DNA of 64,000 nucleotides from the NCBI GenBank assembly GCA_964106645.2, contig OZ067043.1; one strand, 5' to 3'. Every line of letters begins with the position of its first letter. Positions within the stretch are counted from its first letter, which is position 1. The stretch is from Podarcis pityusensis. Taxonomy: Eukaryota. The notes beneath the pieces were generated by a model. The model was given only the letters and a program-made list of their open reading frames with translations. It made no database searches and had not been told where the DNA came from. The position numbers were made by a program, and so were the translations under genes. Positions 8,323 to 63,825 of the stretch are shown piece after piece.

Positions 8323-13958
<5,636 letters not shown>

Positions 13959-14264
13959 GCCCTTTGCCACCAGCCTGTCTGCCAGCTGCAGACTCTGTAC
14001 ATATTTATTTAATGTCTTCTGTTGGCTTGGGATGGAGCTTGGTGTATAAATTTATTCCCGTGATCTTTCCCTGCGAGGCCGTGGAAGAACCTGACCAATT
14101 GATGTGTGTGTGAGAAAGAATCTGTCCTCCTTTCCTTCCATCCTTTCCTGCTCCACTTCCCCTGAAAGAAGGGGCTGGATGGACCTAGGAGAAGGAGCCT
14201 AGAGTCTTCCAGCCCTTGCACTCTTTGTGGCAACCACTGCCAACAGCAATGCCATGTTCTGTGA

Positions 14265-14270
14265 AATAAA
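14265..14270 (+). terminator. Poly(A) signal of ATP6V0B
   Basis: AATAAA about 300 nt after the stop codon, followed by pyrimidine/GU-rich sequence. Confidence 0.7.
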
Positions 14271-17200
14271 CTCATCCGTGTCCCAAGTAGTTTCCCTTCC
14301 TTGTGCGCCCCGTGCTGCTGTGCCCCTCCTGCTACCCCGGCTCCTGCTGCCTCTCACAGTCCACATTTTCTGGAACAGCCAGTGGTACTGGCTGAAGATT
14401 TGGCTCTGCAGGCTATGGGAGGTGCCCTCCTAGGCACATCTGTTCCATACTGAAGGGGTGCATAGGAGCTAAAAGTTGTGATTTTTTGAGTTCCCTGAAA
14501 CTTCACAAATGATTGGTTAATTAAAATTAATTATGGGAAATGTCTTGTACTGTGATTAATAGCTGCTGTTTCTCTGTGGTTTGCCTGCTGTTCATCAAAC
14601 TGCTCAATGCAGGGGTGGGCAAACTTCAGGCTTATCTGATTGTCTTTGTTTCTTTAACTGGAATCCAAAATCTACTAACCAGGGGCAAAATATAGATTTT
14701 TTTTTTTTAGAAGGGGTTCTTCTGAGCCCAAGTCTTCTCCTGCGTAACTTTCATCATTTCAGCAGCCAAATTTAGATGGGAAAGGTCATTTTGTTATTTC
14801 CTTTAGACAACTGATAGTTGAAAAGCCCTGCTGATTGATTGCAAATCACTCAGAGGTTTGATAGAGCCTGTGAGGTAGGTGCAAAGGCTGTAACTGGCCC
14901 AAGGTCACCCAGTGAGCTTCATGACTTGAGTGGGGATTTGAACCCTGAAGTTTTAAAGTGTTGTAAACTTTAAGGGTTTTTTTCCTTTATAATGTGGTAT
15001 AGAAATGAAATTAATCATCATCAACATCATCATCCCTGAGAAAGAAAATGAGACCTGGACATTCCATTGTGGCAGCCACAACCTAGGTTTAAATTACCAT
15101 TTAGTGATTAGCTTATATATCTGAGTTTCTACACTGGACCCCCATGGATTGGAGGTTCCCTCTCCCAGGGTAAAGAGTATTCCTGCTACCTCTTCCCAGG
15201 GGTGGGTAGTTTTGCAGTCCTAGGACCATGAAGCGTATTAATTTACAAAACTGTATTTGTATCCTATCTTGGGAGTTGCCAAAGGCAGCTTTCAGTTAAA
15301 GCAAAACTTAGCTGAAAATTAGAAGCCAGAGAGTCACATTGCAGAAGGGGAAACACTTCTTATGGTAGGATGAATCTAAGGATCTTATAGCTTAAGCCCT
15401 GAGCAGGATTTGCCATCTGTAATCCAATCCCATGCCAGCCTTACCTGGTAACTGTAAGGGTGGGAGGAAAGAGCTGGATTCCAGGCAGCAAAATTTGTTA
15501 TTTTCCCTGCAAAGTTTAGATAGTCAAATGGGGGGGGGGGGTATTGTGATATATTCTTATTTTAAGGAATATATAAAAAAAGAAAACTGATTCTGTTTGT
15601 TTGTTATTTCATTATTTACAGCAAGTCTTCACTGTTCTGATTGGCTCAGTGCTTTTGGAGAGCAACAGAGCTGTGCTTATTTTTCTACAGGAACTTAAAA
15701 AATTATGTGGCAGGGTGTTTAGTGTCACCTTTTGGGTTCCTTGCTGGGACAGAGCCCCACCCCGGGAGATTTCCTGAAACACTTTTGACAACTGTATATT
15801 TAGCCTCTTTTCCACGTTTCCCACTACTCTGAGTAAAAACACTTGAATTTACATGTGTGAGCCATTCTGCTGTTTGTTCTGAAGGCAAAGATGTTCCTTT
15901 GGGACACTCAGTGACATAACTGGTGTTCATCTAAATAAAGCTTTTAATAACATTGCTAGTGGGGCAAGATCTGACCCATATAAGCTAGAGCAGGGCTACC
16001 AGATGGGGTTGCATGTTCCCTTGCTCTCCATAATTTGATTGTCAAACTGTAGCTTTATCAGCATGTGGTTATAAAAGTCATCAAAGGATAGAGAACATCA
16101 TCTTTATGTTGATGATACCCCGATGCTCTCTCATAGGCTGACTGAAATGGATTCATTTAGTGTTTAAAAAATGATGTAGGTCAGGTGGTGGAAGAAGCCC
16201 TCCAGTAAATGGCTCTGTCAAGGACGTTTCCTTCAGTTCAGATCTGTACATGTTTTGATAGCTAGATGTGATGGCTTGTGTAAATTTAGAGGACATAGAG
16301 CCTCAAATTTCAGTTCAGCTTCATAACTGACAAGCCTAACATCTTGCTGTGGGGCAAAACGGATTTCAAAAGACAAACATTGTTTTGTCTAGTGCCACCT
16401 ACATTCTTTCCTGGTGATGTATTTACAAAATCTTTCCTATTTAAAACATATAGGACTATAACAATATGTCCAGAATAGCCTTAACACAAACTGGAGTTGC
16501 TATAGGTGGGGATGAGGGATTTATTTTCCTAACCTTTAAGCTGCGCTACAAGACTTACCTGCTTTTGAATGCAGCCCGGTGGTCCCTACACAACATTTCT
16601 TAAGCACTGAGATATGTATAACAAGTCTCTTCAAGGTCTGCATCTCAGTTACTTGTGATGGCTTCGTTTGCCTGCAGTTCATACTCTTAATGTTCTTCTC
16701 ATTGTGATTGCAGCTCAGGGGGGGGCTTTTCTTTACATAGATAATAACTCAAAATTTGACCTGTACACGTAACCTCAGGTCCTTGATTTTGCATACCCCA
16801 CTTCTGTGTATTTAAATACAGTCATTGGGTGAGCAGTCAGTATCACAAGATGAATCTTGATCCAAACAAAACACCTACATTCTGATTGTCATATGTGAAA
16901 TCATAGTAACTGTCACTGTTCCAAGAAATGGGCTAGTTTGGCTTTATTCTCATTGGAAATATGCTGGAGAAGTTGTGAGGGTTCCTTCAGATCAGGACAG
17001 GTTGCTGTTCTGTGGCATGAGTAGGGCCTGCTACACTGTAGCTCCACATTTTCCCCCTCAAAACATGTTGTGGTTACTGCCTAGAGGTGGCTTATCTTGC
17101 AGAGGCATAACCCTGGCAAGCCCATTGCTTTTTAGGAACCTTACACTGGCCTTGCGTGTTTCTGTGCTGCAGATAATTCTCTCTATTTAACAAATGTGTG

Positions 17201-28790: not shown

Positions 28791-31700
28791 ATGAGCAGAT
28801 TGCTGGTGGGAGTGACCCTGGAGAGGATCTGCAAAGCTGTGCTGCTCTTATGTTTACTGCACTTCCTCATCATCATGATCCTCTACTTTGATGTCTACGC
28901 CCAGCGCCTGGACTTTTTCAGCCGCTTCAATATGCGCAACTCCTCCCGCACTCTGCCCTACGTCAACGTCTCTCGGCCTAACGGGACCGCCGGGCCTCTG
29001 GGCCCTGAGCTCCTGGCCCCGAGTGTGAAGTCCGTCAGTATGAACAGCACTGTCACCGAGAAGCCCTTACCACCTTGCCCAGAGATGCCTCCTGGCCTAG
29101 GTAAGATTACAGATGAGCTCTGTCTGCCTCATGCCGTGTCCTACAGAAGGCCCTTTAGTGGGGAAACTGTATTGCAGTTATTGGGTTTATTTGTGCCCTG
29201 CTTGCCACCTGCTGTTTCCCTGTCAATGCAAATATGTCAAGTGGCTTTGGCTCCTGATAAGAGGAACTAGAAGATCTAGGAATCTGCAGAACAGGCATGG
29301 TATTGCAAATCATAGGCTCCAATAGCCTCTACCATTGGAGCCAATCCTGCAGTGGAAAAACAGTTGGGAATATGTGGACAGTAATTGTTGAAAGCTGGCA
29401 AACTGAATAGTGTTCTTAGTATATTTACAGTGATCAGATAGCGGATTTTTTATTTCCTTTTTTGCCATGGCAACTCCTTGTCTCTTTCCCAGCCCCACTG
29501 TACCTAGCTGGTACCTTTCTGCAAGTGGGCTACAAGTAATTGGGGAAAGGGCTCAGCTTCTGCACAGACACGGCTTAGTAGGGGCTACAAGGGTTAGCTT
29601 CTTCTTATGCTGATCTCTTTGAATGAATGCATGAAGTAGACCAGCTTTCACTCACCTGATGCCCTCCAAATGTATTGGACTACAACATGGCTGCGGCTGA
29701 TGAAACGTAGCACAAAAACATCTGGAAAGCACCTGGTTAGTGAAGACCAAAGTAGACCATCTCCTCACCCTAGGGGGCAAAACATTTAAGGCATAGAGAA
29801 CTTAATACCCTTATTCCTGACAGGTGAATAAAGAGTTGAAGCATAAGCTTTGGTACAGTGGTACCTCTGGATGTGAACGGGATCCATTCCGGAGCCCTGT
29901 TCGCATCCTGAAGTGAACGCAACCCGCGTCTACGCATGTGCGGGTCGTGATTCGCCACTTCCGCGCATGCGCGTGATGTCATTTTGACTGTCTACGCATG
30001 TGCGAGTGGCAAAACCCGGGAATAAAGGGCTCCGTTACTTCTGGGTCGCCGCAGTGCGCAACCCGAAAATACTCATCCCGAAGCTACTTAAACTCAAGGT
30101 ACGACTGTATTGATATTTAACTGGGGCTAAAACTTTTATTAAACAATGCAACCTGCAACAAGCAACAACCTTTCCTGTTAACTCTGAATCACTTAGCTGG
30201 GTATTCAAGTTAACTCTGCTTTGACTGTTTGCTGTCTCTATGCTTGATACATGTTTCGGTATTTAGGTTTCTTTGCTGATTTTTTTCTGGGCAGTGCCCC
30301 ACCAACTTGGCTGGTGAAAGGGACATGAGCTGTTTGTGTAAGTCAAGAGGCTGTGGCTGATGCATAGATAATGGAGTCCTTTCTCCTGCAGTGGGCCGGC
30401 TCCTTATCGAGTTCAGCACTCCCATGAGCATGGAGCGGGTGCAACGGGAAAACCCAGATGTGCGGGAGGGCGGCAAGTATTCTCCCCCAGACTGTGTGCC
30501 TCGCCAGAAGGTGGCCATCCTCATTCCGTTCCGGCACCGGGAGCACCACCTCAAGTACTGGCTGCACTACCTGCACCCGATTCTACGGCGCCAGAAGGTG
30601 TCTTATGGCATCTATATAATTAACCAGGTGCGTAGAGAATGATAATGTGAAGCAGTGGTGCAGTTGGGTCATTGAGTATTCTGGACTGAATGGTCTCATG
30701 GGCATCTCCTTCAGATGGTAATGTGCATTACTTCAAAATATGGTGTTCCAGCCCTGCTGTGCTCCAAAGCAGAAGGAGTAGGGCCTGGATATCTGACCCA
30801 AAGTTCTGTCCTAATGGCACCACTGATGCGGAAGAGAGCAAGATGGTTGGGTTTAGAACATAGTGCCATCTGGTTCCCTTGAGAGGAACCTGATTAGGGA
30901 AAGCGGTATGTTAGTTTTCATGAATATATGCCTCTCTGTTCTGAGTGGAAGTAAAGGCTTCCTGCTTTGTGGGGGAAGTTGAGTGTGGGCCTTACAATGC
31001 ACCATGAACTTTGCACCTATGGTAAGTGTGGAATGTGACGTAGATGCTTCTCACTTGCTTCTTGTTTTAAAAAAAATCAGGCCTGCTCTCTGACATGACA
31101 ATAAATCTGCAATACAGTTGGTGGGACATTGCAAGATCTATAAAGCGAGATATAACAATTCTAGAAAAAAATAGGAAAACGGTAGAATGTTATTCACAAT
31201 GAAATGTAACAAGAGAGAGGTCAGCCAGATGCATCAGGTAAGAGTAAAAGGGTTGTGGCAGTTGATGTGATCCTGTCCTTCATTATCTTTCCGTACAGTT
31301 TGGTGAAGACACCTTTAACCGAGCTAAGCTGTTGAATGTGGGCTTCCTAGAAGCCCTTCGAGATGATGAGAGCTATGACTGCTTCATCTTCAGCGATGTT
31401 GACCTGGTGCCCATGGATGACCGGAATCTCTATCGCTGTTATGACCAACCCCGGCACTTTGCTGTTGCCATGGATAAGTTTGGCTTCCGGTGAGTTTGTG
31501 CACTTTGATCTTTTTTGAAATGCCAGTGGCCCCTTGAAAATGTTCAGAGTGTCAGAGGCAAAATTGAAGGAGGAATATATGACTTTATTGCACACATAAC
31601 TTATGTGCTCTCATTCTGTGTGGCTTGGACATTGTGGGGACCTGCAAGCTGTGAAATGTGTTTCTTATCTAGATTGCAGCACAGGAACCTCCCCCGTTCT

Positions 31701-34700
31701 TAAGACTACCATGTCACATTTCTTCATAATTTGCAGGGTTTTTGTACTTAAAAGTGGGGATATACAACGGCTTTGAATGAATCCCAAGCCAAAGCAGGGT
31801 GCTTTGCAGGGATTCTGGGATTGTCTGAGACAAAGTGGAACCTCTTCAAGGATCCAGAGACAAAGTGGGGATTTCCCAAAGTGCCTCATGGCACCGTGAC
31901 AACTCTGACAATTGTCTGCTGAAATCAAAACTAATGTAGCTAACCTTAGTGTATAAGGAAAACACAAGGGGTGTGGAACGGCTGAAGTAGAACAAATGCC
32001 ATGGTAAGGGGGGCGGGATTCTGCTGTGATGTGACTGACAGGTCAAGCTTGTAACCAGAGGGAATGAGTTCACCTGGAGTCTTCAACCCCAGTGCTTTGT
32101 GAGGAGGAAAGGAAATCCTTTTTAGTTCTGTCCCCTGCCTCCCAAGATTAACTTTAAAAGTCCCTAGTTCACAAAAGTTGAACCAATTTGTCTGCCATTG
32201 GCAAGTTTCATACCTAGGGAAACCTCTTTCGTGTCTGGTTTCCGAACAATTGCCCTCAAAAGACATGGGAAGTTTAAGTGGACACTTTTTACCCATCCCC
32301 AAACTGTGAAGGCTGTCCTTGTGGGAAAACCAATGAAGCTATCATTCAAAAATTTGACAGGATTCATCTTTCTTGGAGACTCTGATGCCTGCAAATTTCA
32401 TCCAATAGTGGGGGAGGGGGAAAAGTTTCCTTAGAAAAATAACCATAAAATTTCAAAGGTACCTGACAGAAAAAAGCCCCACCCTGGAACTATTTGGCTG
32501 GCTGAATCCGCTGTGGAGCGGCAAATGTGCCTGCAAATTTTATCCACTGTAAAAAGGGGGGAAGGTATAGCTTAAAAAACAACAACAACCCAATAGTGAA
32601 TGAGGGGAAATGAAATCTTGTTTTTCCCCAACTCAGACTCAGAAGCACTTGGGACTGAGGCATGTTGTTTTCTGAAGTACTGACTCAAGGTCCAAACTGA
32701 ATCTTCTGTTTGGTGCACACCCCTAATTTAAACTTTGCTGCCTCTTATATGACTAGATGAAATGCTCCAGGGAAGTCCTTGTGATACTACATTATGGAAT
32801 AGGCGCTTGCAAAACCTATATGAAGGTGATGTAAACAAGCAGACAGGATCCCCACGTGAATGTTCTGTGTTGCCTATATTCTTACCTGCCAAACATGGCA
32901 AAAGGAGATGGAGGAGGTACAGTGTGTATAAAATGGAACCCTGCATTCCAGCTAAGGAGAAGGGAAATGGGAAGGATTTAGGAGAGACCTGATGCAGTGG
33001 GAGCAATGGGTGACATCACATGGCTGATTTGGAAACTGGGATTTAGACTGTGTCAGGTGTAGCTTGGACCACCCAGGTTCTGTGCTCCTGAACCCATTCG
33101 TGGCTTGACTGATTCCCATCTCTCCTGCTTGTCCTCTGCAGGCTGCCATACTCTGGCTACTTCGGAGGTGTCTCTGGCCTGAGCAAGACACAGTTTCTGA
33201 AGATCAATGGCTTCCCTAACGAGTACTGGGGCTGGGGTGGGGAAGATGACGACATCTTTAACCGGTGCGTGAGAGGCTGGGCCAAGCCTAGCCAGAACTT
33301 GTTCTCTGCAAGTTGGTTGTAGTAGCCATGTAGTCTGTTTTTCCGTGTGGTGTCTCCTGGGAATGTGCTGAGTGGCAGGGAACAGCATTCTCTTCTGGGG
33401 TGGGGTAGCTGTGCAAATGGCAGGTGCCAATATGCAACACCTGCCTTTCCTATAACAATGCTCCCAAATCTGAGAGAGGAGGACATAGGCAGGTAGGTAT
33501 TCCACAGCACATAACAGGCAGGGCCAAATAGAAGGCCTGGGGAGCCAATACTCTGAAAGCCAGAAGGGGTTGGGGGTGCTGAGGACTGGAGGGTGAGGAC
33601 TAACTCCAGCTTTATTTAGAGTTTGCCCCCAACCTGTCTGCTGGTCTTTGAGCTGCACTTTTTCTTTACACAGGATCTCGCTTAATGGCATGAAAGTGTC
33701 ACGTCCTGATGCCCGCATTGGGCGCTACCGCATGATCAAGCACGAGCGTGACCGACACAACGAGCCCAATCCCCAGCGGTGAGAGAGACAATGTGCTTGC
33801 TAGCTCCCTACCTAGTCCATTGCAAGCTACATAAGGAGATAGAAAGCTCCCACAAAATTTCTGCACCATTTCCCTGGGCACATAATGGCTTTCAAGCCTG
33901 ATTTCCAATGGAATATAATCTTCCAGACACATTTTCCCTTTTATAGCATACTACTCTACACCTCGTGAGGAGAGAGGGGCCACATTTGTTTGCCTCCCTG
34001 TAGAATGTCCATGAAACAAACCAAGATAGCCTACAAGTCCTTAGCCTTCCCCCAGAGAGTGTTTTCTATTACTGCGTGTGCATTCCTCTCTTTCTGATCT
34101 ACCCCCAGTTTTAATTCCACTCTCTGCCTCTTCTAAGAGACACAGACATGAATCAGAGTCCCAACCATGCACCAGGTGTGTTTGGTTAAATCTATGTTCT
34201 GCTAGTTCTAGGCAAAGAAAGAGAAAGGGACTCCTGTCCTGTGCCCTAACATTTATTGTCTGGAACCAGAGAAAAGCCACAGCTGGCATGGTTTCAGGGC
34301 AATACACTAAACCTTATTTCATGAGACCCTGACATTCCACTTGAGAAGGTTGTGTGGTGGTAGTAATCACCTATCATGAGAACTAAATGCAGTCACCATC
34401 CATGGCCCTCCAGGATCCTATGACGCCATCACACTTTGAAACCTTGCTATATCATTTGACAGGGACTGTTGTTTTACAGCTGAGCTCTGGGTGGAGAAGC
34501 TCTCTGTTACTTGGGACTTTCAACCTGGAAGGGCTGTGCATGGTGATTGTCCGTTCATGTGTTCAGAAAACACAATTTCATTTTGGAAGTCCCAGTGCTT
34601 TGTATGCTGGAAATCTGACATAAGAAATTGCTTTATTGTGCGTGGATAATGCCACGTAAGGCTCTTCCCAAAATCCTTCCAAGTGGCCTGAGCTGTCATT

Positions 34701-35102
34701 AGATTCTCTATTCCAGGCTTCCTCAAACTCAGCCCTACAGATGTTTTTGGCCTACAACTCCCATGATCCCTAGCTAGCAGGACCAGTGGTCAGGGATGAT
34801 GGGAATTGTAGTTTCGAAACATCTGGAGGGCCGAGGTTGAGGAAGCCTGCTCTATTCCATTCATCAAGGAATGGCTTGTAGGTTTAACTTGAATTAACCT
34901 AACTGCCCACTTTCATGTGTAAGATGACTTTCTCTCTGGTTCTCCTGGCAGGTTCACCAAAATCCAGAATACCAAGGTGACCATGAAACGCGATGGCATT
35001 GGCTCGCTTCAGTACCGCCTGGTGGAGGTGGTTCGTCGTCCCATGTACACCAATGTAACCGTGGAGATTGGCCGCCCACCACCACGCCCCCCTCGGGGCT
35101 GA
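28791..35102 (+). CDS. B4GALT2: Beta-1,4-galactosyltransferase 2 (371 aa, complete CDS)
   Basis: Coding exons 28791-29100, 30392-30627, 31299-31489, 33142-33264, 33674-33778, 34952-35102 (1116 nt, GT-AG, phases consistent). N-terminus MSRLLVGVTLERICKAVLLLCLLHFL (type II anchor); motifs FNRAKLLNVGF, FSDVDLVP and WGWGGEDDD; C-terminus ..IGRPPPRPPRG*. Synteny with ATP6V0B and CCDC24. Confidence 0.97.
29856..30107. mobile_element. Tc1/mariner (Tigger/pogo-like) non-autonomous DNA transposon
   Basis: TA|CAGTGGTACCT ... AGGTACGACTG|TA: imperfect TIRs flanked by TA target duplications. Confidence 0.85.
34714..34849. mobile_element. hAT-type MITE
   Basis: Perfect 13-bp TIRs CAGGCTTCCTCAA / TTGAGGAAGCCTG; perfect 8-bp TSD CTCTATTC (34706-34713 / 34850-34857). 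Confidence 0.9.
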
Positions 35103-36479
35103 CTCTTTGCTGCCTGGCTCTGCCCATGGCCCCATGCATGAGGAGCTGTGCGGATCCCAGCCCTGACTGGTTCAGAGGACTGTGTCCTGGCTTGGAGGAG
35201 CTGTCTGCCTCCTTTGTGGGGATGCGGGAAAGGCCAAGACTACACCTTCGCCTTGCCCCAGCCTTTGGCTGAAGCCCATCTCCTGATCACTAGTCAGTTC
35301 TTCACAGTGCCCTTCACAGGTTGGGGAGGAAGTGTGAGTGTGACGTGGTGCCTGGCGCAGCGCTTAGGGGTCCTGGGCACAGCCAAGCCCCACTCCTGGC
35401 TGGAAGGCACTGAGAGCAGAGAAACCTTGTGCAGGTTCTTGAACCTCCCTATCCTCTCCCAGAACTTTTCACAGAGCGGCATCCCTTAAGGATCCCGGAA
35501 GTACAGTACAGGTAGTTGTTTTCCTTTCCTCTCAGTGTGCAAGAGTGCCGTCTGAGCCTTCCTTCCAGGGGGTGGCCTGGCCTTACGACAAATGCCAGCT
35601 CGCAAGGTGTCCAGGTGGTTCACTTGTGCCCAGCTGAGGAGAAGCTCTTCCAAAGGAGAAGCTCTCATGGGCCTGGCCACTGCCCACCTCCATTCATGGC
35701 TTGGTGCTGTCCCCCTGCTGGGCCCTGGGTGTCACTTCTGGCTCCAGTAACACAGGGGTGTTTTATACAAAACCCTCATTAGAATACTTGAGTGCTTCCT
35801 GGGTTAGTGTGACAGGTAGCCTGTCTGTCAAGGGACAACAGGTCATTCTTCCTAGCAGTGTTTGCTCTTCTGTCTGTGAATGGGGAATATTGGTTGGGCA
35901 GTGTGTGCTTCACTTCTCAGCAAGGGTGGAATCAAAATGGCATGGTTCGGCCTACTCTCTGGTGTGGGCTAGCTTCTCTTTTTTACAGGCACCGATGGGC
36001 CTATGGCCATGGCTACAGAACAGAGGAAGGTGAAGTTGGCTTCTTGCTGCCTGTCCCCTACCTCTCACCTCCAACCCACTTACCCCATTCCAACCCTCAC
36101 TCACCAATCAACCTTCCCGCCATCTGCCAGGCAACCTGCCGTTGACCACTCATCGTGCCCTCTTTGTCAAGCTGCCATCTGCCACCACCTGAGGCCAGGC
36201 CCCTGGGTCCGACCGTCTGCTCATGACACATGGTGGCCGTGTGCCTAATTCCTGGAGCTAGGAAGCTGCTGGTGTCCCTCATCTCTGGTTATGGTGCCTG
36301 GCAGGTAGAATCTCCTGCGCCGGTCCACTTTGGGATGGCAGCTGGGCCAGGCTTGAAGCCAGGCACCAGCGTGTTGCGCAGCCCAGGTGTTGGTGACTTT
36401 TGTACATTTGAATGTTTTGATCCCTTTTCAAGCCTATGGTGAATGCAGCACTGGTCACTACGATCAGACTTTTGTATTC

Positions 36480-36485
36480 AATAAA
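36480..36485 (+). terminator. Poly(A) signal of B4GALT2
   Basis: AATAAA preceded by TGTA elements, about 1.4 kb after the stop codon. Confidence 0.75.
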
Positions 36486-36738
36486 GTTTCAAAACTTGGG
36501 AGACTCCTTGCCTATGGGATTCAGGTGGGGTCTGTGGATAGAGGCAACACTGCAGGTTTATGCAATCTATCTTGGCAAGGTACAAAATTAAGAATTAAAT
36601 TCGTTTCCAAATGAATGGCACCTCATTGTGCTTCCCCAACATGTTTGTTTAAAGCAGGGACTGGGTTTTCTGGCCCAGGAAACTCTGGGCGTAGTTACTC
36701 AGCCCAGAAGACAAGAGAGAACTATTCTACAAGGTTCT

Positions 36739-36744
36739 TTTATT
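36739..36744 (-). terminator. Probable poly(A) signal of the Brorin-family gene
   Basis: TTTATT on + (AATAAA on -) about 470 nt downstream of the stop at 37213. Confidence 0.6.
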
Positions 36745-36849
36745 GATGCTCACACACAGAGAAAAACTGTTCAATAGTAGCAAAAGATGCTATGTTTAGT
36801 TGAAGCTGGAGTGGGAATGTGGTGGTGGTTGGTGGGTGATTCCCTAAAT

Positions 36850-36972
36850 CATATGGGGAACCTCTAGCTCTCAAGATGTGGCTAAATTATTCCTAACCAT
36901 TAGCCATGCTGGCTACAGCTGATGGGAGCTGGGAGTCCAACTATATCTGAACGGCCACAGGTTGCCCACCCA
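36850..36972. mobile_element. Degenerate hAT-type MITE in the predicted 3' UTR of the Brorin-family gene
   Basis: Same internal motif as the other copies (GCTGATGGGAG..GGAGTCCAAC..ATCTG..GGCCACAGGTT); flanks CCCTAAAT / TCCTAAAT resemble an 8-bp TSD. Confidence 0.6.
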
Positions 36973-37212
36973 TCCTAAATAAAACGGGCTTTCTCATATG
37001 AGCTACTCCCCTGTTTAATAACTCTAGACATTGTCAAGGGAAAGGGGGTAGATCTTGAAAGGGGTCTGCGACTGGCAATTGCTTATGTGTATGGTTGAAG
37101 GAGTTGGGCCAGGGCTGGGTGTAAGGGCACACTAGGGCTTGTCTGGGTAAGCAGAAGCCTTGCAGGTGCTGAAGAATGGCTGGCCCAGGAATTGTTTGGT
37201 GTTTGGAGCAGC

Positions 37213-40200
37213 TCAGGTGTGATGTGCACCTGTAGCCCGGCATCCCCGTAGCCGCTCGCATTTAGCTAAGCGGTTTCCTTCCCAGTAACCGGCGTCCTGG
37301 CCATCATGACAGCGGCAACGGGTGCAGGGCCCCACCCATATGCTCTCCCCAGCAGGAATTACGCGTCGCTGGCTCCCATCCACGTAGCAGTTGGGCCCTG
37401 TGGAGAGACATGTCCATGTATTAGAGTCTGCCATTGTTTGCAGAAGTCTCATCATGACTTTTAGAAGCAGAAATGGCAAGCAGTTTAAGAGTACATGTGT
37501 AGGTGGGGCAACCCAGCCAGATGGGCGGGGTATAAATAATAAAATTATAAATTATTATTACTCCAGCCTTGCACCCCTATCCTCTACCGGGAGCTCACCT
37601 AGTGCCTGTTTGTCCACAGGTTCTGTGCTACAGGCTGCTTTTGTACCAGGAGGACATTTTTCATTTTGGGGGGAGCCCCTCTTCTAACACTAGGGCCAAA
37701 CACCTGCCAAATCCTTCAAGATGAGGTGGGGGTTACCAGGTGTCCCACCATCATTTCTAAGTAGGAGGCTTCCTGTTCAGTTAAGCAACCTTGTGTCTGG
37801 TCAGCTTGGCCCAATTCCTCTCACTTCCCTGCTCCAGTAGGACAGGGGCCCTGAACAACGAGGGAGACAAAGTTCTCTCCCCCTTCTGGACAGCTTGAAG
37901 TGGAACACTTGTCCCTTGCTGTGAAGGTGTGTCTTTCTCACCGTCCTCACAGGTGGGGCAGCAGTGGCCCTTCTCGTAGACTGGATTGACACAGGGAGGA
38001 GGGGCGCAGTCTGCCACTAGGCAACGAGCGATGCCATCTAGGTCACAGGTACACTGCTCGCACTCTGAGGGCTGTGAGAGACAAATATTGGTCAATAGAG
38101 CAAGGCAGCTTTACGTGGACAGCACATGGTTATGATGATGATGATGCAGCTGCTACCCTGTTTCCCTCCCCCTTTTCCTCCTAATGAAATTAGGCTGAGA
38201 GAAATAGGTTACCCATCCACCCCACACCACCAGGTTGCAGAATTGACTGGATTTTGCAGTTCCAGAATGAATTAGTCATGTCTTCTGTCTGTAACTTGCA
38301 AAAAGAGATGTGTGTATGCAAGCAGGTGGGAAACTCATGCCTCAGATACTTAATTGGATTAGGCTCCTGACTGCATCTTTGCTTACCTGTATCTGTGCTT
38401 TAAGTATCAGGGGAGGGGGTGATCACAAAAGAAATATAAGGCCCATCATCTTCCTTTTTTTGTAATGTGTGAAGAAGCATTCCAAACTGAATGCATAGCC
38501 ATGGCAGTACTGGGATTATACCATCAGATGGCACTATCAACCAAGAATTGATAGATAAGGAGGGAGGAAAAGCTTCTGTACCAATCTCCCTTGACTTTTC
38601 TGAGGAAAATACAATTTTCTGAGGAAAATACAATTTTCTGAGGAAAATACAATTTTCTGAGGAAAATACAATCTTTAAATAATCTTCCCAACAATACTAT
38701 ACTAGCTACTATGGATGTGGAATCTCTGTATACCAGCATCCCACACAACGATGGTTTACAAGCTATAAGGAACACCATTTCAGATAAAACCACAGCGGAC
38801 CTTGCCACCAAACTCTGCCAATTTGTCCTTACCCACAACAACTTCAAATTCGGTAATGACCTGTTCCTTCAGATCAGCGGCACAGCAATGGGCACCCGCA
38901 TGGCCCCACAGTATGCCAACATCTTCATGGCAGATTTAGAACAACGTTTCCTAAACTCCTACCCACTCAAACCTCTCTTGTACCTGCGATACATTGACGA
39001 TATTTTTATCATCTGGACACATGGTCAACAGACCCTGGACACCTTTCACCAGAAATTTAATGATTTTCACCCCACAATCAACCTAACAATGAATCAATCT
39101 ATGCAAGAAATACATTTTTTGGACACTACTATAAAAATACAGGATGGGCGCATAGACACCACCTTATACCGTAAACCAACTGACCGACAAACATATCTAC
39201 ATGCCTCTAGCTACCATCCCAAACATACCAAACAGTCCATTGTATACAGCCAGGCACTACGTTACAGCCGCATCTGTTCCAATTCTACAGACAGAGACTC
39301 TCACCTAAGAGATCTACAGCAAACCTTTTTAGAACTAAAATACCCAGCAGATGAAGTTAGACAACAGATCAACAGAGCCAGACTGATACCCAGAGAGAAC
39401 TTGCTGCAAGACAGACCCAAAAAAGAAAATAACAGAACACCTCTAGTCATCACATACAGCTCCCAAGTTAAAACAGTACAACGCATCATCAGAGATCTAC
39501 AACCTCTCCTGGACAATGACAGTTCTCTTTCTCAAGCTCTGGGAGGAAGACCTTTCATTGCCTACAGACAGCCACCCAATCTTAAACAACTCCTAACCCA
39601 CAATAATACTACAACCAGACTTAACACCGACACTGGCACCAGAGCCTGTAATAAACCCAGATGCCAACTTTGCTGCCACATACACCCGGACAACACCATT
39701 ACTGGCCCCAACAACATCACACATACCATCTCGGGACTATTTAATTGCTCATCGTCTAACATTGTGTATGCCATCAAATGCCAACAGTGTCCTTCAGCTC
39801 TCTATATTGGACAAACAGGCCAAACCTTACGCCAAAGAATAAACGGACATAAATCAGACATCAAGAATCACAAAACAGAGAAACCAGTAGGAGAACACTT
39901 CAATCTCCCAGGACATTCTATACAAGATCTCAAAGTAGCTGTTTTGCTACAAAGGAATTTCAGAAATAGACTGGAAAGAGAAGCTGCTGAATTGCAACTC
40001 ATTACCAAACTTAAAACCATGGAGAGACCTGGTTTGAACAAAGACATTGGATTCTTATCTCATTATACATGACTAAGCCATTTCTCACCTTCTCACCCCT
40101 TGCCTTTTCCTGTAAGACCTATTGCAGTCGTTAAGAGTCGTCAACAGGCTCATCCCAGCTATCTGCCAATCACCCATTCCCACCACCCTTCTGAGTAATA

Positions 40201-42689
40201 CCCCTCCCCACCTTCTCACTATATAGAAGGATCTGGCAACTTCTGTTTCAGTGTATCTGAAGAAGTGTGCATGCACACGAAAGCTCATACCAAGAACTAA
40301 CTTAGTTGGTCTTTAAGGTGCTACTAGAAGGAATATTTTTTATTTTGACTATGGCAGACCAACACGGCTACCTATCTGTAATCTGTCCCTTGACTTTGTG
40401 TATCTTGTCAGCTCTGGCCAACTCAAGATTACTCTCAAATAATCATGCGGCTGGCCACTGGGGAAACTGACTGGTCATAAGAAAATGTTGAATAGAGAAA
40501 ACTGTGAGTGAGTGAGAGATTGTCCCCAGTAGCACAGAACCATCAAGGATCCCAATATGCTAAAAAGGCCCATGAATGTGTTTTGGAACCCATTAACCAA
40601 TCAAGCTCCTCCTTAAAATATCCAGCAAAGGATACTGAAGTCATTTTCAGCACCTCACCTCTCATTCGCCTTCTCACTTGCAAAACATGAGGTAATTCTA
40701 GCCAAGCCACATGCTTTTGTTCTCTGCCCTAAGGGGAAAGTTCCAAGATTCTACCATCTGTCAAATTCCCTCCCTCCTGAACTAATAGATTGGTTGTCTG
40801 ATTTCACACCTTCAGGGTGGGTGATGATAAAGACTGGGCTCCATTGAAGTTCAAGTGGTTGCAAATAAAAACATTGGTCACTTGTTCTAGATCACTCATC
40901 ACAATACTTTAAAATAACAAAGCTGGAAGATGACATCAACATTTAACACCAAAAATCATATCTTAATGATGTAATTGTCCATGATCATCTTTATAACTCC
41001 AGGGAAGGAGATTGCACAACTTCACTGGCAAGTTGATATCTTGTTCTTACTACAAACCTACAGTACAAAGGAAAGTGTTTACCCTTCCTAATTACAGAAT
41101 TTTTCTCTCTCTAGATCTACAGCACTTGTCTTGCTTGTAAGCAAATGTAAGATAACCTAGTTCCAGGAGGTGCTGGGAAGCAGCCCTATATTACTGTATC
41201 CACAACCCAGATGTTCTGGACCTAGAGCAAAATGGCCATCCCTAGTAAAGAACTGAGAAGCTTTGGCTGAGCAAAGTATTTTAGGGCAAGTTAGGCCCCA
41301 GCTAAATGGTTCTGGATAATCAGAAGCTTGCTTCCTATTATATGATATTTTGGTTGGCCATAATAAAGTTATTATTTGGGGGGAAATTATGGCTCAATAT
41401 GGCTTTGCAGAAAGCATTTACTTTCTGTGTACCTTTCAATAGAATTTTGTGTTTGGGTAAATGGGACAGGCCAAGAGATAAGTCATCAAACAGACACACA
41501 ATAATTTGGTGTTTAGCTAACGGACAATTCACCTAGGAAGAACCCCACTGCCCATTCTTTGACTATATGTAGCAACTGGTCCTTTCTTCATCAATACACT
41601 TATTTTTTGCAAACACTCAATTCATGCTATCCAAAGAGGCATGGAGCCCAGGAATGGAGGGCTTTGATCTTCCACCTGCAGCCTCAGGGCCAGAATTTGA
41701 CTCCCTTCGGCTAGTGCAGGCTTAGTGCCAAAAATACTCCTTTCCGAACCTACCCTCAATTGTCCAAGTCAGCCATGCTAGAGATTGTTTGGTCTGACTC
41801 AAGTCCTAAAATAAACTACACACATTTTTGGCAGCAACAGACAATAGCCAGAAGCAAGGTCTGAACAGGTCAATGTCAGGCCTAAGAAATGGATGAAAAT
41901 GAAATTCAATTAGTCAAAGGATGCTCAGCTAGGTACTACAGCCAATAAAATTGCCTTCTGAATTATTGGTTTTATGGGAACATCTTAAGAGCACCTCCAG
42001 CTTCATAGAGCACTTTTGATTTGGTGCTTCTCGCCCACTTTGGAAAAATGCAATTTATTAGTTTTGTTTGTATTTTCTTTTGCTTCAGCCAGTAATAAAC
42101 TATAAAGACACAGCGTTCCTGCTTCCAGTCTCTTACTCTCCTGCCTAGGCCTCCCTTTCAGAACAAGATTTAAGAAACAGAAGGGACTGCTTGAGATTCT
42201 TTTTCAGGAGCGTTCGCTTTTTCTCCTGCTTTTGAATATCCTCACTTTGCCCATCCATCACCTATTCATCCCTGCCCACCTCGCTCTAGATTCCTTCTCA
42301 TGCCACCCCTTTGCCTAATTCTCCCTTGAATGCCTTACCTGGAAATGCTGCCCCAGCTCATACACTTGTCCACGGTGCTCACAGCCAACCCTTTCGCAGC
42401 GTGGGCAGCAGTCGCTGGGGTAGTGGCTGACGTGAATGCAGGCAGGTGGCAGAGCGGTGCAGTCCGTGCGGGCGCAGGCGGGCCCCTCCGCTGTGCACTC
42501 GCACTGGGTGCAGTGGTCACTGTCCAGGAAATACCACTCCCCAACATAGTACAGGCTCCCGTTGGCATCGCACGTGGTCACTGGCCCTGCCAGTCCTGGG
42601 ATGGGCACCAGAGTCAGCAGCAGCAGCGCTAAGCTCAGCTGTGCCAACGGAAAGGGCATCGCTGAACTCGAGGGACAGATGCCGGGCAT
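37213..42689 (-). CDS. Secreted von Willebrand factor C domain protein, Brorin (VWC2/VWC2L) family, 221 aa
   Basis: Coding exons 42689-42339 (phase 0), 38071-37942 (phase 1), 37397-37213; 666 nt, GT-AG. Signal peptide (LAQLSLALLLLTLVPIPGLAG), then CDANGSLYYVGEWYF..CTQCEC..C..CCPRC, CEHRGQVYELGQHFQ|PSECEQCTC..CLVADCAPPPCVNPVYEKGHCCPTCED|GPNCYVDG..IPAG..CTRCRCH..W. An alternative ATG at 42659 is in frame. Confidence 0.9.
38596..38671 (+). repeat. Four perfect tandem copies of 19-bp TTTTCTGAGGAAAATACAA
   Basis: Units at 38596, 38615, 38634 and 38653, at the 5' junction of the Penelope-like element. Confidence 0.95.
38711..40072 (+). CDS. Penelope-like element reverse transcriptase + GIY-YIG endonuclease (N-terminally truncated)
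   Basis: RT motifs DVESLYTSIP, GTAMGTRMAPQYANIFM, RYIDDIF and FLD; Cys linker CNKPRCQLC; endonuclease IVYAIKC..LYIGQT..RQRINGH..E..GLN. The frame is open from about 38654, upstream of this internal Met. Confidence 0.92.
   Translation: MDVESLYTSIPHNDGLQAIRNTISDKTTADLATKLCQFVLTHNNFKFGNDLFLQISGTAMGTRMAPQYANIFMADLEQRFLNSYPLKPLLYLRYIDDIFIIWTHGQQTLDTFHQKFNDFHPTINLTMNQSMQEIHFLDTTIKIQDGRIDTTLYRKPTDRQTYLHASSYHPKHTKQSIVYSQALRYSRICSNSTDRDSHLRDLQQTFLELKYPADEVRQQINRARLIPRENLLQDRPKKENNRTPLVITYSSQVKTVQRIIRDLQPLLDNDSSLSQALGGRPFIAYRQPPNLKQLLTHNNTTTRLNTDTGTRACNKPRCQLCCHIHPDNTITGPNNITHTISGLFNCSSSNIVYAIKCQQCPSALYIGQTGQTLRQRINGHKSDIKNHKTEKPVGEHFNLPGHSIQDLKVAVLLQRNFRNRLEREAAELQLITKLKTMERPGLNKDIGFLSHYT
40253..40290 (+). 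ncRNA. Minimal type I hammerhead ribozyme in the Penelope-like element 3' end
   Basis: GTAT-CTGAAGA-A-GTGTGC/AT/GCACAC-GAAA-GCTC-ATAC: helix I GUAU/AUAC, core CUGANGA and GAAA, palindromic helix II, helix III reduced to AGCU. Predicted cleavage after C40286. Confidence 0.85.
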
Positions 42690-42699
42690 GGGAGTTGGC

Positions 42700-43640
42700 G
42701 AGAGGGAGGAGCAGAGCAGCAGCAGCAGTAGGGAAGCGAAGCGGAGGAGAGCTGGCGGGGAAAGTGGGCATCCAGTCCGCTCCAATGCCGCCCGCGGGGT
42801 CCCGCCGGGAGGTTGCCTGCTGAAGCTGCGGCTAAGAACCGCCCTGGCGTGCCTCGGCCTTTGTGCAGCCGCCGCCCGGCCCGGCCCGCCCCTTCTTGCA
42901 ACCCGAGCCCGCCCAGGGGCACAGCACCCCCTCTCCAACGGAGCGGGCGGGACCGGGGCGGTGGGAGGGACCTGGCCCCCTATCTGCACCTCAGGAAAAG
43001 CCTGCTAAGAAAAGTCTCCCTCTCCAAACCCCTCGAACACTCATCCGGGCAGCGAATGCTGTGTCTCCCCAGTTCCCAGTCTCCGTGGCCTCCAAAACAC
43101 GCGCAGCGCTGGATCTCTCTCTCTCTCCCCCCCCCCCCCCCCCGTATTCCTGGGAACATTAATGGGCAAAGAAAGAAGTTTCTCAATACTGTACTGTTGC
43201 CAAAGCGTAAAGCCAGTGGGACCCCTTCCGGATGAAAACTGGCCGACGTGTGGCTTCTCTTTACCTCCGATTGCTTGGGTGCAAGCGCGGGCGCGCCAAG
43301 AGCTTCAACGCGCACGTTTCCTTCCTCCGGGACCCCCGTCTCCACGCTCGACCGACATCCTGTCTGCCTCGTGGGCACGGCTCCTTTAAGAGGCGAGGCT
43401 TCAGAGGAACGCGGCGGGGCGTTTCCATGGAGACGGCGAGTTTATATTCCAGAGAGTTAGAGGGTGGAGGGGGCTCGGATAGGGCAATACGCCTGGCCCT
43501 CCGCCCCTCCGCCCGGTGTCGCAGGTGAGGGCTACCGCAGAGTTATGTCCGTGAGTCCGTAGGAAGTGAGGAAGTGTGGGGAAAGTAAAATGTCTGGGGC
43601 GGAAGTGGGCTTGGTGGGCCGAGACGTAGGTGAGCTAAGC
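42700..43640. promoter_or_regulatory. CpG island / putative bidirectional promoter shared by the Brorin-family gene (-) and CCDC24 (+)
   Basis: CpG-rich; X-box GTTTCCATGGAGAC 43421-43434; TATAAA on - at 43441-43446; GC boxes near 43500; ETS motifs GGAAGTG at 43562, 43570 and 43601; candidate + strand donors at 43525 and 43630. Confidence 0.7.
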
Positions 43641-43720
43641 ACTGGGGAGCAACTGTGGGGAGGGATAATGGGCAATAGGTTACATTTGGGGCTATAAACA
43701 ACTACCTGACATTCAGAAGA

Positions 43721-43890
43721 CATCTGAAGGCAGCCCTATTCAGGGAAGTTTTTAATGTGTGACATTTTAATGTATTTTTAATCTTTGTTGGAAGCCGCCC
43801 AGAGTGGCTGGGGAAACCCAGCCAGATGGGCGGGGTACAAATTAATAATAATGATAATAATAATAATAATAACAACAACAATAATAACGA
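43721..43890 (+). mobile_element. L2-type LINE 3' end with (AAT)n/(AAC)n tail
   Basis: GGAAGCCGCCCAGAGTGGCTGGGGAAACCCAGCCAGATGGGCGGGGTA followed by a microsatellite tail; a shorter copy of the same terminus is at about 37503-37560. Confidence 0.7.
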
Positions 43891-44910
43891 TTAACGGGAA
43901 TTAGTGTGACTCTCGAGGTTAATGTGAGGGGATGGGTTTGGTATATGGGGAGCAAGAAAAATGATATGCTCTTATTCTCTGGTGGCTCACGTGGGAGAAA
44001 GGTGAGTGCAAGTAACATGATTTGTAGACAGTAGTGCAACTCAGGGGGAAAGTACAGAGCACCACAAAAATGGGGTGCCTCAAATGGCAATCTAGAGAGT
44101 GTCAGGTGATGGAATCAGGAACAAACGACCTGTGGCAGCACCTGGGCTGACATGGGCATGTTGTGGTCTGTTGGCGCTGATGGTACTCACAGCGGCATCC
44201 TTATTTTCTACAACAGTTTTAGTCAGAGGGTGGTTAGCCAGGCATGTACATGGGACTCGATTCTATTTTTTACTTTTACTTTCATCCTTGGTGATCACCT
44301 CCCCCCAATAAATGTGTTTAACATCAGGGCAGCTGAAGCAAATTCCATTGTATTTCTGTAATGCTAGTGCTATGACTTAAGTGAGTTTAGAATGTGAAAC
44401 TGTACATGCTCAGAGTATTTCACAACCATTTATCTATTGTGCTAATGTATCAGGAACGTAGGAGCAGTTATAAAACATGGGAATGGCTTACCTTACAACT
44501 GACAACTGACAAATGTAATATGTAGTGGCTGTCTAATGGGAGAGGGGTGTAAAACCATGGATGTGGCCAGGATTTTAATTGGGGAGGGACAAAGTTGTTG
44601 AACTTTTCTTGGGAAATCATGGGTAAAAATACCTCATAAATAGGACATTGTGGGGGGCCAGGCTTCTGTTGGGGGGGGCAGAACCTCAGATAATTGAATA
44701 CTTTCAATGCTTTTCAATAATATTTGTGAATCTTGGGAGGGCAGCAGCCCATGTGTAAAACCATTAAGTTCAGTGTCTAAAATTACCTAGGTGCACCACT
44801 GCATGTTGCACCGAGTAGTTGTGATGTGGAGCTTCTACTCACTGTCTCATTGGCACAATCTTTCCCCCCCCTTTAAAGCCTCATTTATCGTGGAATCGGA
44901 TACAGCACCC

Positions 44911-47900
44911 ATGTTGCCCTTGCCTGGTGCATCTGGGGAATCCTTGCAGTCTGTACCATCACTCTGGACAATGGTAGAGGAACAATTAGCACCCAGTGAG
45001 AGGCTTGAGGCGAAAGCTATCTTGGGTCATGGCCTTGTGGAACGGAGCTTGGAACTTCATGCTGAGGTTAAGTACCGAAATACTGGATCTCCTATTCAAA
45101 ATGATTCACAAAAGAGCAGAACAAACAAACCACCCCTCTTACTACACAATTTAGAAGTGGCTGGTGACAGGGATATCTGAATAAAGCATCAAATCTAGGT
45201 CTCATCAGCTAAAGAGGCAGCACTAATTTTGTAAGGGGATTTGACTGATGAAAGGGCCCGCCTTTCATGTCTATAGATTGAGTGGAGTGGACTGAGTGCT
45301 AAAATTGAGTGAAGCTAAGGGAGGGCTTATAAATTGTATTAAGCCCCCTTCCACTGAGTACTGGCCACTAGTTTTGGCATACATGCATTTTCATATAGAG
45401 TAGCATTCATGTGTATGATGTATCATGTGTATTCATGTGTATGGAGAAAACCTCTGGTTTGCCACTTACATCTGCTTTGAGTGCCGTTTAATTTCAGTGA
45501 AAGGAAAGCATATCTGAGAAGGTGAGTCAAGGAGGAGATAAAATGTTTCAACCACCCCCTCCCTGTTTGACAAGGTCCCCATTTGCCAGCTCTCAGCTCA
45601 GCTGGTTCCTAATGCTTGGCCAGAGCCCCTAATCCATGCTATTCCAGGCCCTTTGTTCTCCTCCAGCCATTCATGCCCTTTCTTTATTCAGCATGGTCCT
45701 GACTGCAGCTGAGAAGAACAGTAAACATCCCAGAGGCTTTTCACATGGTAATTGCCTTACCTCCTCCTGAAACCAGAAGAGCAAGCACAGCACACCCTGA
45801 CAAGATGGCACCTTTTTCTCTCTATCACTTCTTCATGTTAGAGCTTTGCTTGAGATCCACCCCCCCCAACATTCTGACCAGTGACCCCCTCCCCAGCCTT
45901 TATGGGGTCTCTCACCTGGCTGTCTATTACCTCTTCATCACAAGCCTGATAAATGTAGCCCAGGTACTGACTGTCTCCCTGCTGTGTTCTTGTATGTGTC
46001 TCTGCTCCCCTCCCCAATTGGATATCTGAGAGGCCGCCCAGGGAAGCAGCTGTACCATAACGTTCCTCTTGTGGATGTGTGGGGCCAGAAAGGGAGTTCT
46101 GGCGCTCGCTTGCCTTACAAATATCCTGCAGATATTTTTGCGGCATGACCTTGACTTTCCTCATGGGGGGAGGGAGAGAATGATTGTGGGTGGGCTGTCT
46201 GCAGCTTTGCACCTTTTATGGAGTGTACAGACAGCAACAATGCAGTGCCCTCTTGCCAACTACATTGGAATGACAGTGTCCTGGCTGGTGTTCTTATCTT
46301 CTGCAGACAACTTTGCCCACTTTCTGCAAAAGAGTTGTTTTTTTAAAACCTAAAAACTTCACTCTTAAGCCTAAAATACTCTTCACATAAACTAATAGCC
46401 TCATAGTCTGTTCCCAGTCTTTGGGCAGATGCAATGTTTTACTGAATTCAGTGTGCTCTCACACACATTTATCACATTTGAGGCATCTTTTATTCCCTTG
46501 ATGGATGACATACTTCCGAAAAGTTGTTAGTTCCCTGACTGTGGCCTTTATGAAATGTAATTGTCTACTATCAGGTGAGTAACTAACCCATAGCTAGGTA
46601 TTGGTTTTCTTTTCTTGCGGGCAGGCACCTGGCTTGATTTCCAGGTGTGCAGAATACCAATACTGGAAATGGGAGTGCAACTTGTATTTTTAGGTTGTGT
46701 CAGTGCTTCATCATTTGGGGAGGTGGAGGGTGGGGGAAAGATTACTTTGAGAAAGTTACTGCAGTTTGTGTCAATGTGCACATGTGTGAATTTCTGCATG
46801 TGGCAATGCACTGTCCCTAATGCAGTCCAACCCCTTCCCTATTTACAGGTGCGGACCCTGTTGGAATTACATCAGGAGTTGCAGTCAGGCCTCCTTGGAG
46901 TGGAGCAAAGCCCACTGCAAGCGGATGACAGCTGGGCCTTGCTGGCAGCTCCCCCCAACCTCAAGGAGCTGGTGAGGGAGGAGATCCGCCTTCTTCTAAT
47001 TGGCCTACAGCAGAAGGCATCGCAGGAGGGCAGGTACTGGAGATTAAAAGAGAAGGGACTTGAGAGAATTAAGGGCTGAGTTGAGGGGGAGCAGGTAGAA
47101 GGGATAGAAGAAAAGCAAGCAGAATATCTTAAGACCTGAAGCCTATTTGATATAAGAATGAGCCCATTAGTTTCCAACTGATGTGGCTGGTGGTATTTAT
47201 GTGTGTGGAATGGGTGAGTTTTATATCATCTTTTGGCCAAAGCAGTCTAGATTGAGGAAGCCATAACTATTTGTTATGAGAGGCTTAGAGTTTCATGGGA
47301 CAAATCAGTTAGGAGGCTAGACAATAACTTGATTGTCTCTCTTAACAAGAACAGGATGGGGGAAACCTCTGATTCCACTCAGATATAAATAAGTCCAGTG
47401 CCACCTAGTGACTAAACTATATATTTACACTAGTGACACAGTATTCTTTCTCCCTTTGCCTTCTAAGGGTGACTGTTCCAGAAATGCTTACTAGGAAATA
47501 TCCGCTCCAATGCAATTTAATTGGCAGTTCCAGTATAGTTTCCACATGATTGCCACTCAGATGGCCAATGTCCAGCAAAAATAACCTGTGCCAAACCTAT
47601 GTTTGCACCATACACCTCCATCTATAACTTGCGCTCCCCATTCAAGTGCAGCTTGTCAGTTTGTGTGTCTCTCTAGTCTTTTTTATCTGTAGAATTAATT
47701 CCAGCCTTACATTCCCATTCTTTGGGTCTCAATCATATAGCCTTTGTCATTCCCACTTAGCTCCCTTACATCATGCAGGAATCACATTGCTGAGCGCCTC
47801 TATCAAGAATGCCAGTCCTGCTAGTGCGTTTGTTTTTTATGGTGTGTTCAGTCCATAGCCTGAGGCTGGGATTATGTCCCACCTCCAGGTTCAAAGTGAG

Positions 47901-56879: not shown

Positions 56880-63825
<6,946 letters not shown>

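Follow-up and report, generated by a model that had tools for sequence, protein, structure and literature searches.

The locus between B4GALT2 and CCDC24 in the lizard Podarcis pityusensis raises the question of what the cysteine-rich gene lying there is, and why other amniotes seem to do without it. An initial annotation, made on the window (the whole stretch of DNA analyzed, 64,000 nucleotides with zero N), had proposed an unnamed third Brorin-family (VWC2/VWC2L-like) paralogue, kept in reptiles and lost in the lineage leading to human. Human sequence was left out of all comparisons below, as was one primate-like VWC2L protein.

Gene model, transcripts and selection

Three coding exons were identified on the minus strand, with a total of 666 nt (221 codons plus TGA), in agreement with the three clean exons and 221 aa first reported:

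42339 to 42689, minus strand: coding exon 1, 351 nt, 117 codons; leader, vWC module 1 and the start of vWC module 2
37942 to 38071, minus strand: coding exon 2, 130 nt; most of vWC module 2
37213 to 37397, minus strand: coding exon 3, 185 nt; six-cysteine module and stop codon

The exon ends carry GT donors and AG acceptors, and the intron phases are 0 and 1. Two start candidates are available, the upstream ATG at 42689 and a second in-frame ATG at 42659 (Met11). The conserved product probably starts at the latter and has 211 aa, because most squamate orthologues begin there and its Kozak context is better. An out-of-frame ATG at 42771, in weak context, opens an 84-codon frame (42517-42771, minus strand) which overlaps the gene start and is a possible upstream ORF.

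The predicted junctions, 42339/38071 and 37942/37397, were both present in assembled contigs from four runs belonging to four studies, the run type being RNA by prediction and the contigs unstranded. These contigs skip 38072-42338, with CT..AC ends, as well as intron 2, and a single contig of 943 nt spans all three exons. The second joint was recorded as 37398/37944 plus one letter; this letter is a synonymous difference at 37943, and the joint is therefore the same as 37942/37397. The runs were chosen by shared words, a share which may stem largely from the Penelope repeat described below, and the transcript evidence consists of assembled contigs, with read depth left out.

All four coding differences in the contigs of these runs were synonymous. 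The dN/dS ratio (Nei-Gojobori, 175 codons) was 0.12 between lizard and turtle and 0.05 between lizard and pike, not about 1, distant values being rough; against sawfish the synonymous sites were saturated and dN was 0.16. The gene is clearly under purifying selection. A pseudogene was ruled out by the spliced contigs and the dN/dS values.

The exon-3 contig of one run (X3) has 3,812 nt and continues past 37000 (below 37398, minus strand). Based on this unstranded contig, the gene may have a long 3' UTR overlapping the convergent 3' UTR of B4GALT2. An ATTAAA lies near 37014-37019, below exon 3.

Intron 1 contains a mobile element:

38587 to 40397, plus strand: young Penelope-like retroelement, with an RT and GIY-YIG ORF at 38711-40072

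It is 5'-truncated, antisense to the gene and flanked by a 12-bp duplication (38587-38598 and 40386-40397), and its 5' end (38596-38672) has a 19-bp unit in four tandem copies. An empty site was found at the insertion in three of the four runs, hence the insertion is recent or polymorphic; the element is a passenger and not part of the gene. Near its 3' end a minimal hammerhead-like motif was noticed by eye (40253-40290, plus strand), in which CUGAAGA and GAAA boxes flank a hairpin; it had no Rfam match, and its fold was no more stable than those of shuffled sequences. Rfam gave no match in the whole of 36500-44000. In intron 2, very many contigs pile up on a short repeat fragment with an (ATT)n tail (37504-37548), which therefore is a high-copy SINE- or LINE-like end.

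Orthologues, synteny and place in the Brorin family

Exons of both of the neighbours first named, B4GALT2 and CCDC24, were found in the window, together with a more distant gene and a CpG island:

28791 to 36497, plus strand: B4GALT2, coding exons 28791-35099; tail to tail with the gene
42250 to 43500, no strand: CpG island spanning exon 1 and the interval shared head to head with CCDC24; GC 0.59-0.67, CpG observed/expected 0.5-0.83
46843 to 47037, plus strand: CCDC24 exon; head to head with the gene
60264 to 60566: sodium:neurotransmitter symporter exon (SLC6A9)

The CpG island is a probable bidirectional promoter shared with CCDC24, as judged from base composition and gene arrangement, and a block inside it (43383-43445) is conserved in turtle. 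A non-coding element of the B4GALT2 3' UTR (36394-36497, plus strand, with AATAAA at 36480) is conserved in lizard, turtle, crocodilians and penguins.

The gene was determined to be the orthologue of zebrafish zgc:113531 (LOC541359, NP_001013504). It is thus neither unnamed nor a new gene, since orthologues are already publicly annotated in sharks, rays, gar, teleosts, lungfish, amphibians, turtles, tuatara and squamates; RefSeq calls them "VWC2-like" from sharks to lizards and UniRef uses the name zgc:113531. Exon 1 gave matches of 62-97% identity in squamates, turtles, frogs, caecilians, lungfish, gar, teleosts and sharks, to which cluster look-ups added tuatara, salamanders, many sharks and zebrafish NP_001013504. 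Orthologue identity is 60-100% across jawed vertebrates and about 68-70% to teleosts. Exon by exon, the protein is 100% identical to Podarcis lilfordi CAI5777337.1 and matches P. muralis XP_028589577.2 at 115/117, 43/43 and 60/60 positions. The HDGQDxGYWEGNR loop of the zgc:113531 group is present in it. No paper on the gene was found in the literature searched; names with colons are unsearchable, so names in tables may have been missed.

In turtle and pike the gene lies, as in the lizard, between B4GALT2 (tail to tail) and CCDC24 (head to head), and in a caecilian it adjoins CCDC24. The site has therefore been held since at least the bony-fish ancestor. In sawfish there was no neighbour gene within 10 kb. 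In the caecilian Rhinatrema, CCDC24 models flank the gene on both sides, and a second, near-identical protein (XP_029474255.1) is annotated on the same chromosome, by local duplication or as an assembly duplicate.

Trees and folding used public proteins, among them P. lilfordi CAI5777337.1, exon-wise identical to the window. In the maximum likelihood trees VWC2, VWC2L, si:dkey-283b1.7 and two lamprey genes formed one clade on a long stem (support 100/99 and 100/100), and the zgc:113531 gene fell outside it. Forced nesting with VWC2L, VWC2 or si:dkey-283b1.7 was rejected (p-AU 0.002, 0.007 and 0.009, respectively). The zgc:113531 group itself forms one side of a branch with a weak support of 47/74 and stands unresolved at the base in another tree, the root resting on long branches. 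Its patristic distance to VWC2/VWC2L is 3.3-4.2, as against 1.3 between VWC2 and VWC2L. Most likely the split from the lineage of VWC2, VWC2L and si:dkey-283b1.7 predates the divergence of lampreys and gnathostomes, because the lamprey genes sit inside the VWC2/VWC2L clade. A lamprey member of the zgc:113531 type was not found in two word-based protein searches and an exhaustive HMMER scan. With si:dkey-283b1.7 as the fourth, at least four Brorin-family paralogues occur in jawed vertebrates, so that "third" does not describe this one.

VWC2 (Brorin) resembles the lizard protein in its signal peptide, two ten-cysteine vWC modules, six-cysteine C-terminal module and two matching introns. It differs in sequence (about 37-40% identity), in the spacings of module 1 and the third-module loop, in belonging to a separate clade, and in a 100-130-residue N-terminal region and a YRG motif, both missing from the lizard protein. 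VWC2, a gene with two introns, is linked to IKZF1/FIGNL1 (PMC5407822), whereas the lizard gene is found at B4GALT2/CCDC24. VWC2L (Brorin-like) is similar in length and architecture and has the VADCAxPxCVNPVYE segment in common with the lizard protein, but core identity is again about 35-40% and VWC2L has an acidic linker. In the alignment, the acidic linker with its YRG motif and the C-P-C-x-C spacing of module 1 seen in VWC2/VWC2L are absent from the lizard protein, which bears out the missing linker first remarked on. The product of si:dkey-283b1.7 and the lamprey Brorin-like proteins have the same architecture, but their genes fall inside the VWC2/VWC2L clade.

Both introns have the same positions and phases (0 in module 2; 1 in the GPNC glycine) in lizard, turtle, pike, sawfish and Ciona, and the VWC2/VWC2L positions, read from read-through products, match too, as the initial annotation had suggested. 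The Ciona VWC2-like homologue (XP_078487850.1) also resembles the lizard protein in its 26 cysteines. Ciona and the zgc:113531 group also agree in four spacing characters that set them apart from the VWC2 clade: module 1 has C-x2-C-x-C, the CC pair is preceded by nine residues, modules 1 and 2 are four residues apart, and the last spacing is C-x5-C. The first module, described initially as divergent, is instead the ancestral form, because its cysteine spacings match those of the Ciona homologue, and the VWC2/VWC2L form is the derived one. The Ciona protein is at a patristic distance of 4.4 from the zgc:113531 gene and 7.4-8.3 from VWC2/VWC2L; it differs by its 35% identity, longer N-terminus and other neighbours, and the AU test leaves it a possible one-to-one orthologue (p-AU 0.13).

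An origin by translocation of VWC2 or VWC2L or by recent duplication, or else a pseudogene, might be suspected from the database name "VWC2-like", which is also given to VWC2L. Such readings are nevertheless improbable in the extreme, given that the AU tests reject nesting, that fish, amphibian and turtle have the gene at the same locus, and that it is spliced and under purifying selection; a translocated VWC2/VWC2L or si:dkey-283b1.7 copy in particular was ruled out by the AU tests and synteny. The central proposal of an intact Brorin-family paralogue, spliced, conserved and distinct from both VWC2 and VWC2L, is upheld.

Losses in archosaurs and probably in mammals

No match named as a bird, crocodilian or mammal was obtained in two word-based protein searches (one of them using the turtle protein against 1520 candidates) or in one exhaustive HMMER scan, and the proposed absence in mammals agrees with this. 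The alligator, gharial and penguin loci were searched by tblastn, six-frame HMM and nhmmer, with the turtle locus as positive control, and no exon remnant was detected. The alligator locus has zero N in 25 kb and keeps both flanking genes: an 845-bp CpG island fills the interval from the end of the B4GALT2 3' UTR element (16144) to the start of CCDC24 (16989). The gharial locus has a short gap and is otherwise colinear with that of alligator. In three penguin assemblies SLC6A9 follows within 3.3 kb after B4GALT2, with neither the zgc:113531 gene nor CCDC24, and two of these loci are gap-free between B4GALT2 and SLC6A9. The penguin interval (13034-16420) thus lacks CCDC24 too, while crocodilians keep it. 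The gene is deleted at the locus in crocodilians and penguins.

For mammals the evidence is annotation and the protein searches. The opossum annotations lack a gene in the 5.7 kb that separate B4GALT2 from CCDC24 in Monodelphis, and likewise within 10 kb in Gracilinanus. The gene was probably lost in mammals, separately from archosaurs. Turtles, the sister group of archosaurs, have kept the gene, so that any loss in mammals must have been an event apart from the archosaur one. Retention in reptiles, as first proposed, holds for turtles, tuatara and squamates and fails for crocodilians and penguins at this locus; on the other hand, it extends to fish, amphibians and sharks.

Turtle exon 1 (10001-10315 of the turtle locus) has a nonsynonymous distance to lizard twice that of sawfish, and lacks the Asn43 sequon and Trp52. 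This change is probably GC-biased, because GC3 is 0.97 and 54% of the residues are G, A, R or P; the same figures make relaxed selection before the archosaur loss a less likely cause of the acceleration.

The gene could, instead of being lost in birds, crocodilians and mammals, have moved or be hidden in GC-rich, badly assembled sequence. Extremely GC-rich genes are the kind that assemblies miss, and the turtle copy is one such; the penguin locus is without CCDC24 as well, the protein searches were word-limited, and the mammalian evidence consists of annotations. We consider this very improbable, since the alligator locus is gapless with both flanks kept, gharial is colinear with it, two penguin loci are gapless from B4GALT2 to SLC6A9, and all three protein searches lacked a match with a bird, crocodilian or mammalian name.

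Taken together, we are highly confident that this is the slowly evolving lizard orthologue of zgc:113531, that its line parted from that of VWC2, VWC2L and si:dkey-283b1.7 before lampreys and jawed vertebrates diverged, that the gene has had its place between B4GALT2 and CCDC24 from the bony-fish ancestor at the latest, and that archosaurs deleted it, as mammals probably did in a separate event. Its basal position and repeated loss appear to be undescribed in the literature searched.

Protein architecture and proposed function

Based on Pfam matches, exon by exon, the protein contains VWC2L_1st (E 2e-14), VWC2L_2nd (5e-10) and VWC2L_C (2e-17), each match exceeding its curated cut-off. The core contains 26 cysteines (10+10+6), and the leader one more, Cys5. 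The following features were mapped on the gene:

42588 to 42659, minus strand: probable signal peptide, Met11-Ala34, from hydropathy and orthologue starts; cleavage site inferred, pLDDT low
42396 to 42572, minus strand: vWC module 1, Cys40-Cys98, ten cysteines, with sequon Asn43 and the aromatic stretch Tyr47-Phe54
37270 to 37308, minus strand: loop His191-Arg203, specific to the subfamily and different from VWC2; conservation from sharks to lizards is 94-100% at most positions

The hydrophobic leader peaks at residues 16-32, and by hydropathy all orthologues have one such leader and no membrane anchor. Module 2 comprises Cys103-Cys158. Module 3 (Cys164-Cys213) is a truncated vWC or fibronectin-type-I-like unit carrying the first six cysteines of a vWC, with weak likeness to vWC and fibronectin type I units (Z about 3). 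The signal peptide, two full vWC modules and third cysteine-rich module of the first description were all recovered by the Pfam models and the cysteine map, the leader by hydropathy. The sequon at Asn43 is conserved, and beyond the cysteines conservation is found at Tyr47-Phe54 and Ser88-Glu99 in module 1 and at His191-Arg203 in module 3, the last being a candidate binding surface. The mature protein is acidic, with a pI of about 5.3.

The AlphaFold model (pLDDT 82.6, pTM 0.58) consists of a disordered leader followed by three modules in an all-beta chain. Its module 1 resembles the folds of the Crossveinless-2 VWC1, collagen 2A and CCN3 vWC domains (Z 4.5-6.5, all fold-comparison scores being below 8); the best match was collagen 2A vWC (Z 6.5, rmsd 3.8, 67 residues), and BMP-2-bound Crossveinless-2 VWC1 gave Z 4.5. 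PDB sequence searches returned chance matches only, none of them to these domains, and the ESM Atlas only leads under 0.9 or family names.

The proposed function starts from the predicted product. After splicing of the pre-mRNA, the signal peptide would export a roughly 187-residue acidic, N-glycosylated, disulphide-rich rod. Its tandem vWC modules would bind ligands of the BMP/TGF-beta family and keep them off their receptors, as is reported for Brorin and Brorin-like; module 1 would likely make contact by its aromatic face and module 3 by its conserved loop. Redundancy with VWC2/VWC2L would explain the two losses. Ligand sequestration is the leading inference because Brorin acts as an inhibitor of BMP signalling both in vitro and in zebrafish (PMC5407822), and by this analogy we judge it somewhat better than an even chance. 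The vWC fold is no guarantee of BMP binding: the vWC of CCN3 fails to bind BMP2, and Crossveinless-2 depends on a clip segment at its N-terminus (PMC10326224). A clip of the Crossveinless-2 type appears to be absent here, because only about five residues, without a cysteine, lie between the predicted cleavage site and Cys40. The missing clip, the identity of only about 35-40% to VWC2/VWC2L, the long branch between them and the low fold scores would all speak against BMP binding.

The near-invariance of His191-Arg203 over about 450 million years, beyond what the fold needs, would fit a secreted ligand or adaptor which acts through the third-module loop on a cell-surface complex, for instance AMPA-type glutamate receptor assemblies, with BMP binding minor or absent. 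Brorin and Brorin-like are among the AMPA-receptor interactants, their role there being unknown (PMC6502786), and VWC2L bound CD36 on cells in a screen (PMC9578707). The partners need not be common with VWC2/VWC2L, however, because the third-module loop and the YRG-containing N-terminal linker differ, and this reading seems to us rather unlikely.

A matrix or Chordin-binding adaptor, whose vWC modules bind collagen, fibulin-like or vWC proteins and which may even promote BMP signalling, is suggested by a match of exon 1 (42339-42590, minus strand) to fibulin-2, in its cysteine-rich N-terminal region (42-48% identity across some 68 residues, E 1e-4 to 4e-7). The fibronectin type I likeness of module 3 points the same way, as does Crossveinless-2, which is reported to have a pro-BMP role through Chordin binding (PMC2944808). 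The fibulin-2 match is partial and weak, however, and in domain order, number of cysteines and introns the gene stands closest to Brorin-family genes that are reported as antagonists; we regard such an adaptor as distinctly unlikely. Sequestration of BMP/TGF-beta-family ligands is therefore retained as the preferred reading.

A wider and doubtful proposal is that the gene descends with little change from an ancestral chordate Brorin, may be the true orthologue of the Ciona gene, and has its own ligand or receptor engaged through the invariant third-module loop. VWC2/VWC2L would then be a fast-remodelled offshoot, and independent deletions in mammals and archosaurs would have removed a distinct extracellular modulator. 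If true, the removed modulator would be tied to a trait which fish, amphibians, turtles and lizards keep.

The gene is real, annotated and uncharacterized, and belongs to a known family. Many genes have been retained outside the mammals and lost within them, which makes the pattern less surprising; this one is strongly conserved from sharks to lizards and yet lost at least in archosaurs and probably in mammals. The RefSeq name "VWC2-like" is a trap, as it covers zgc:113531, VWC2L and si:dkey-283b1.7 alike. The gene is tractable, a knockout being possible in zebrafish or Xenopus. The Brorin family has been described as two genes and has at least four in jawed vertebrates, of which the zgc:113531 gene is the outgroup, with the ancestral module layout kept. 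It thus offers a natural comparison for asking which surfaces carry the BMP antagonism, and which the AMPA-receptor association, of VWC2 and VWC2L.
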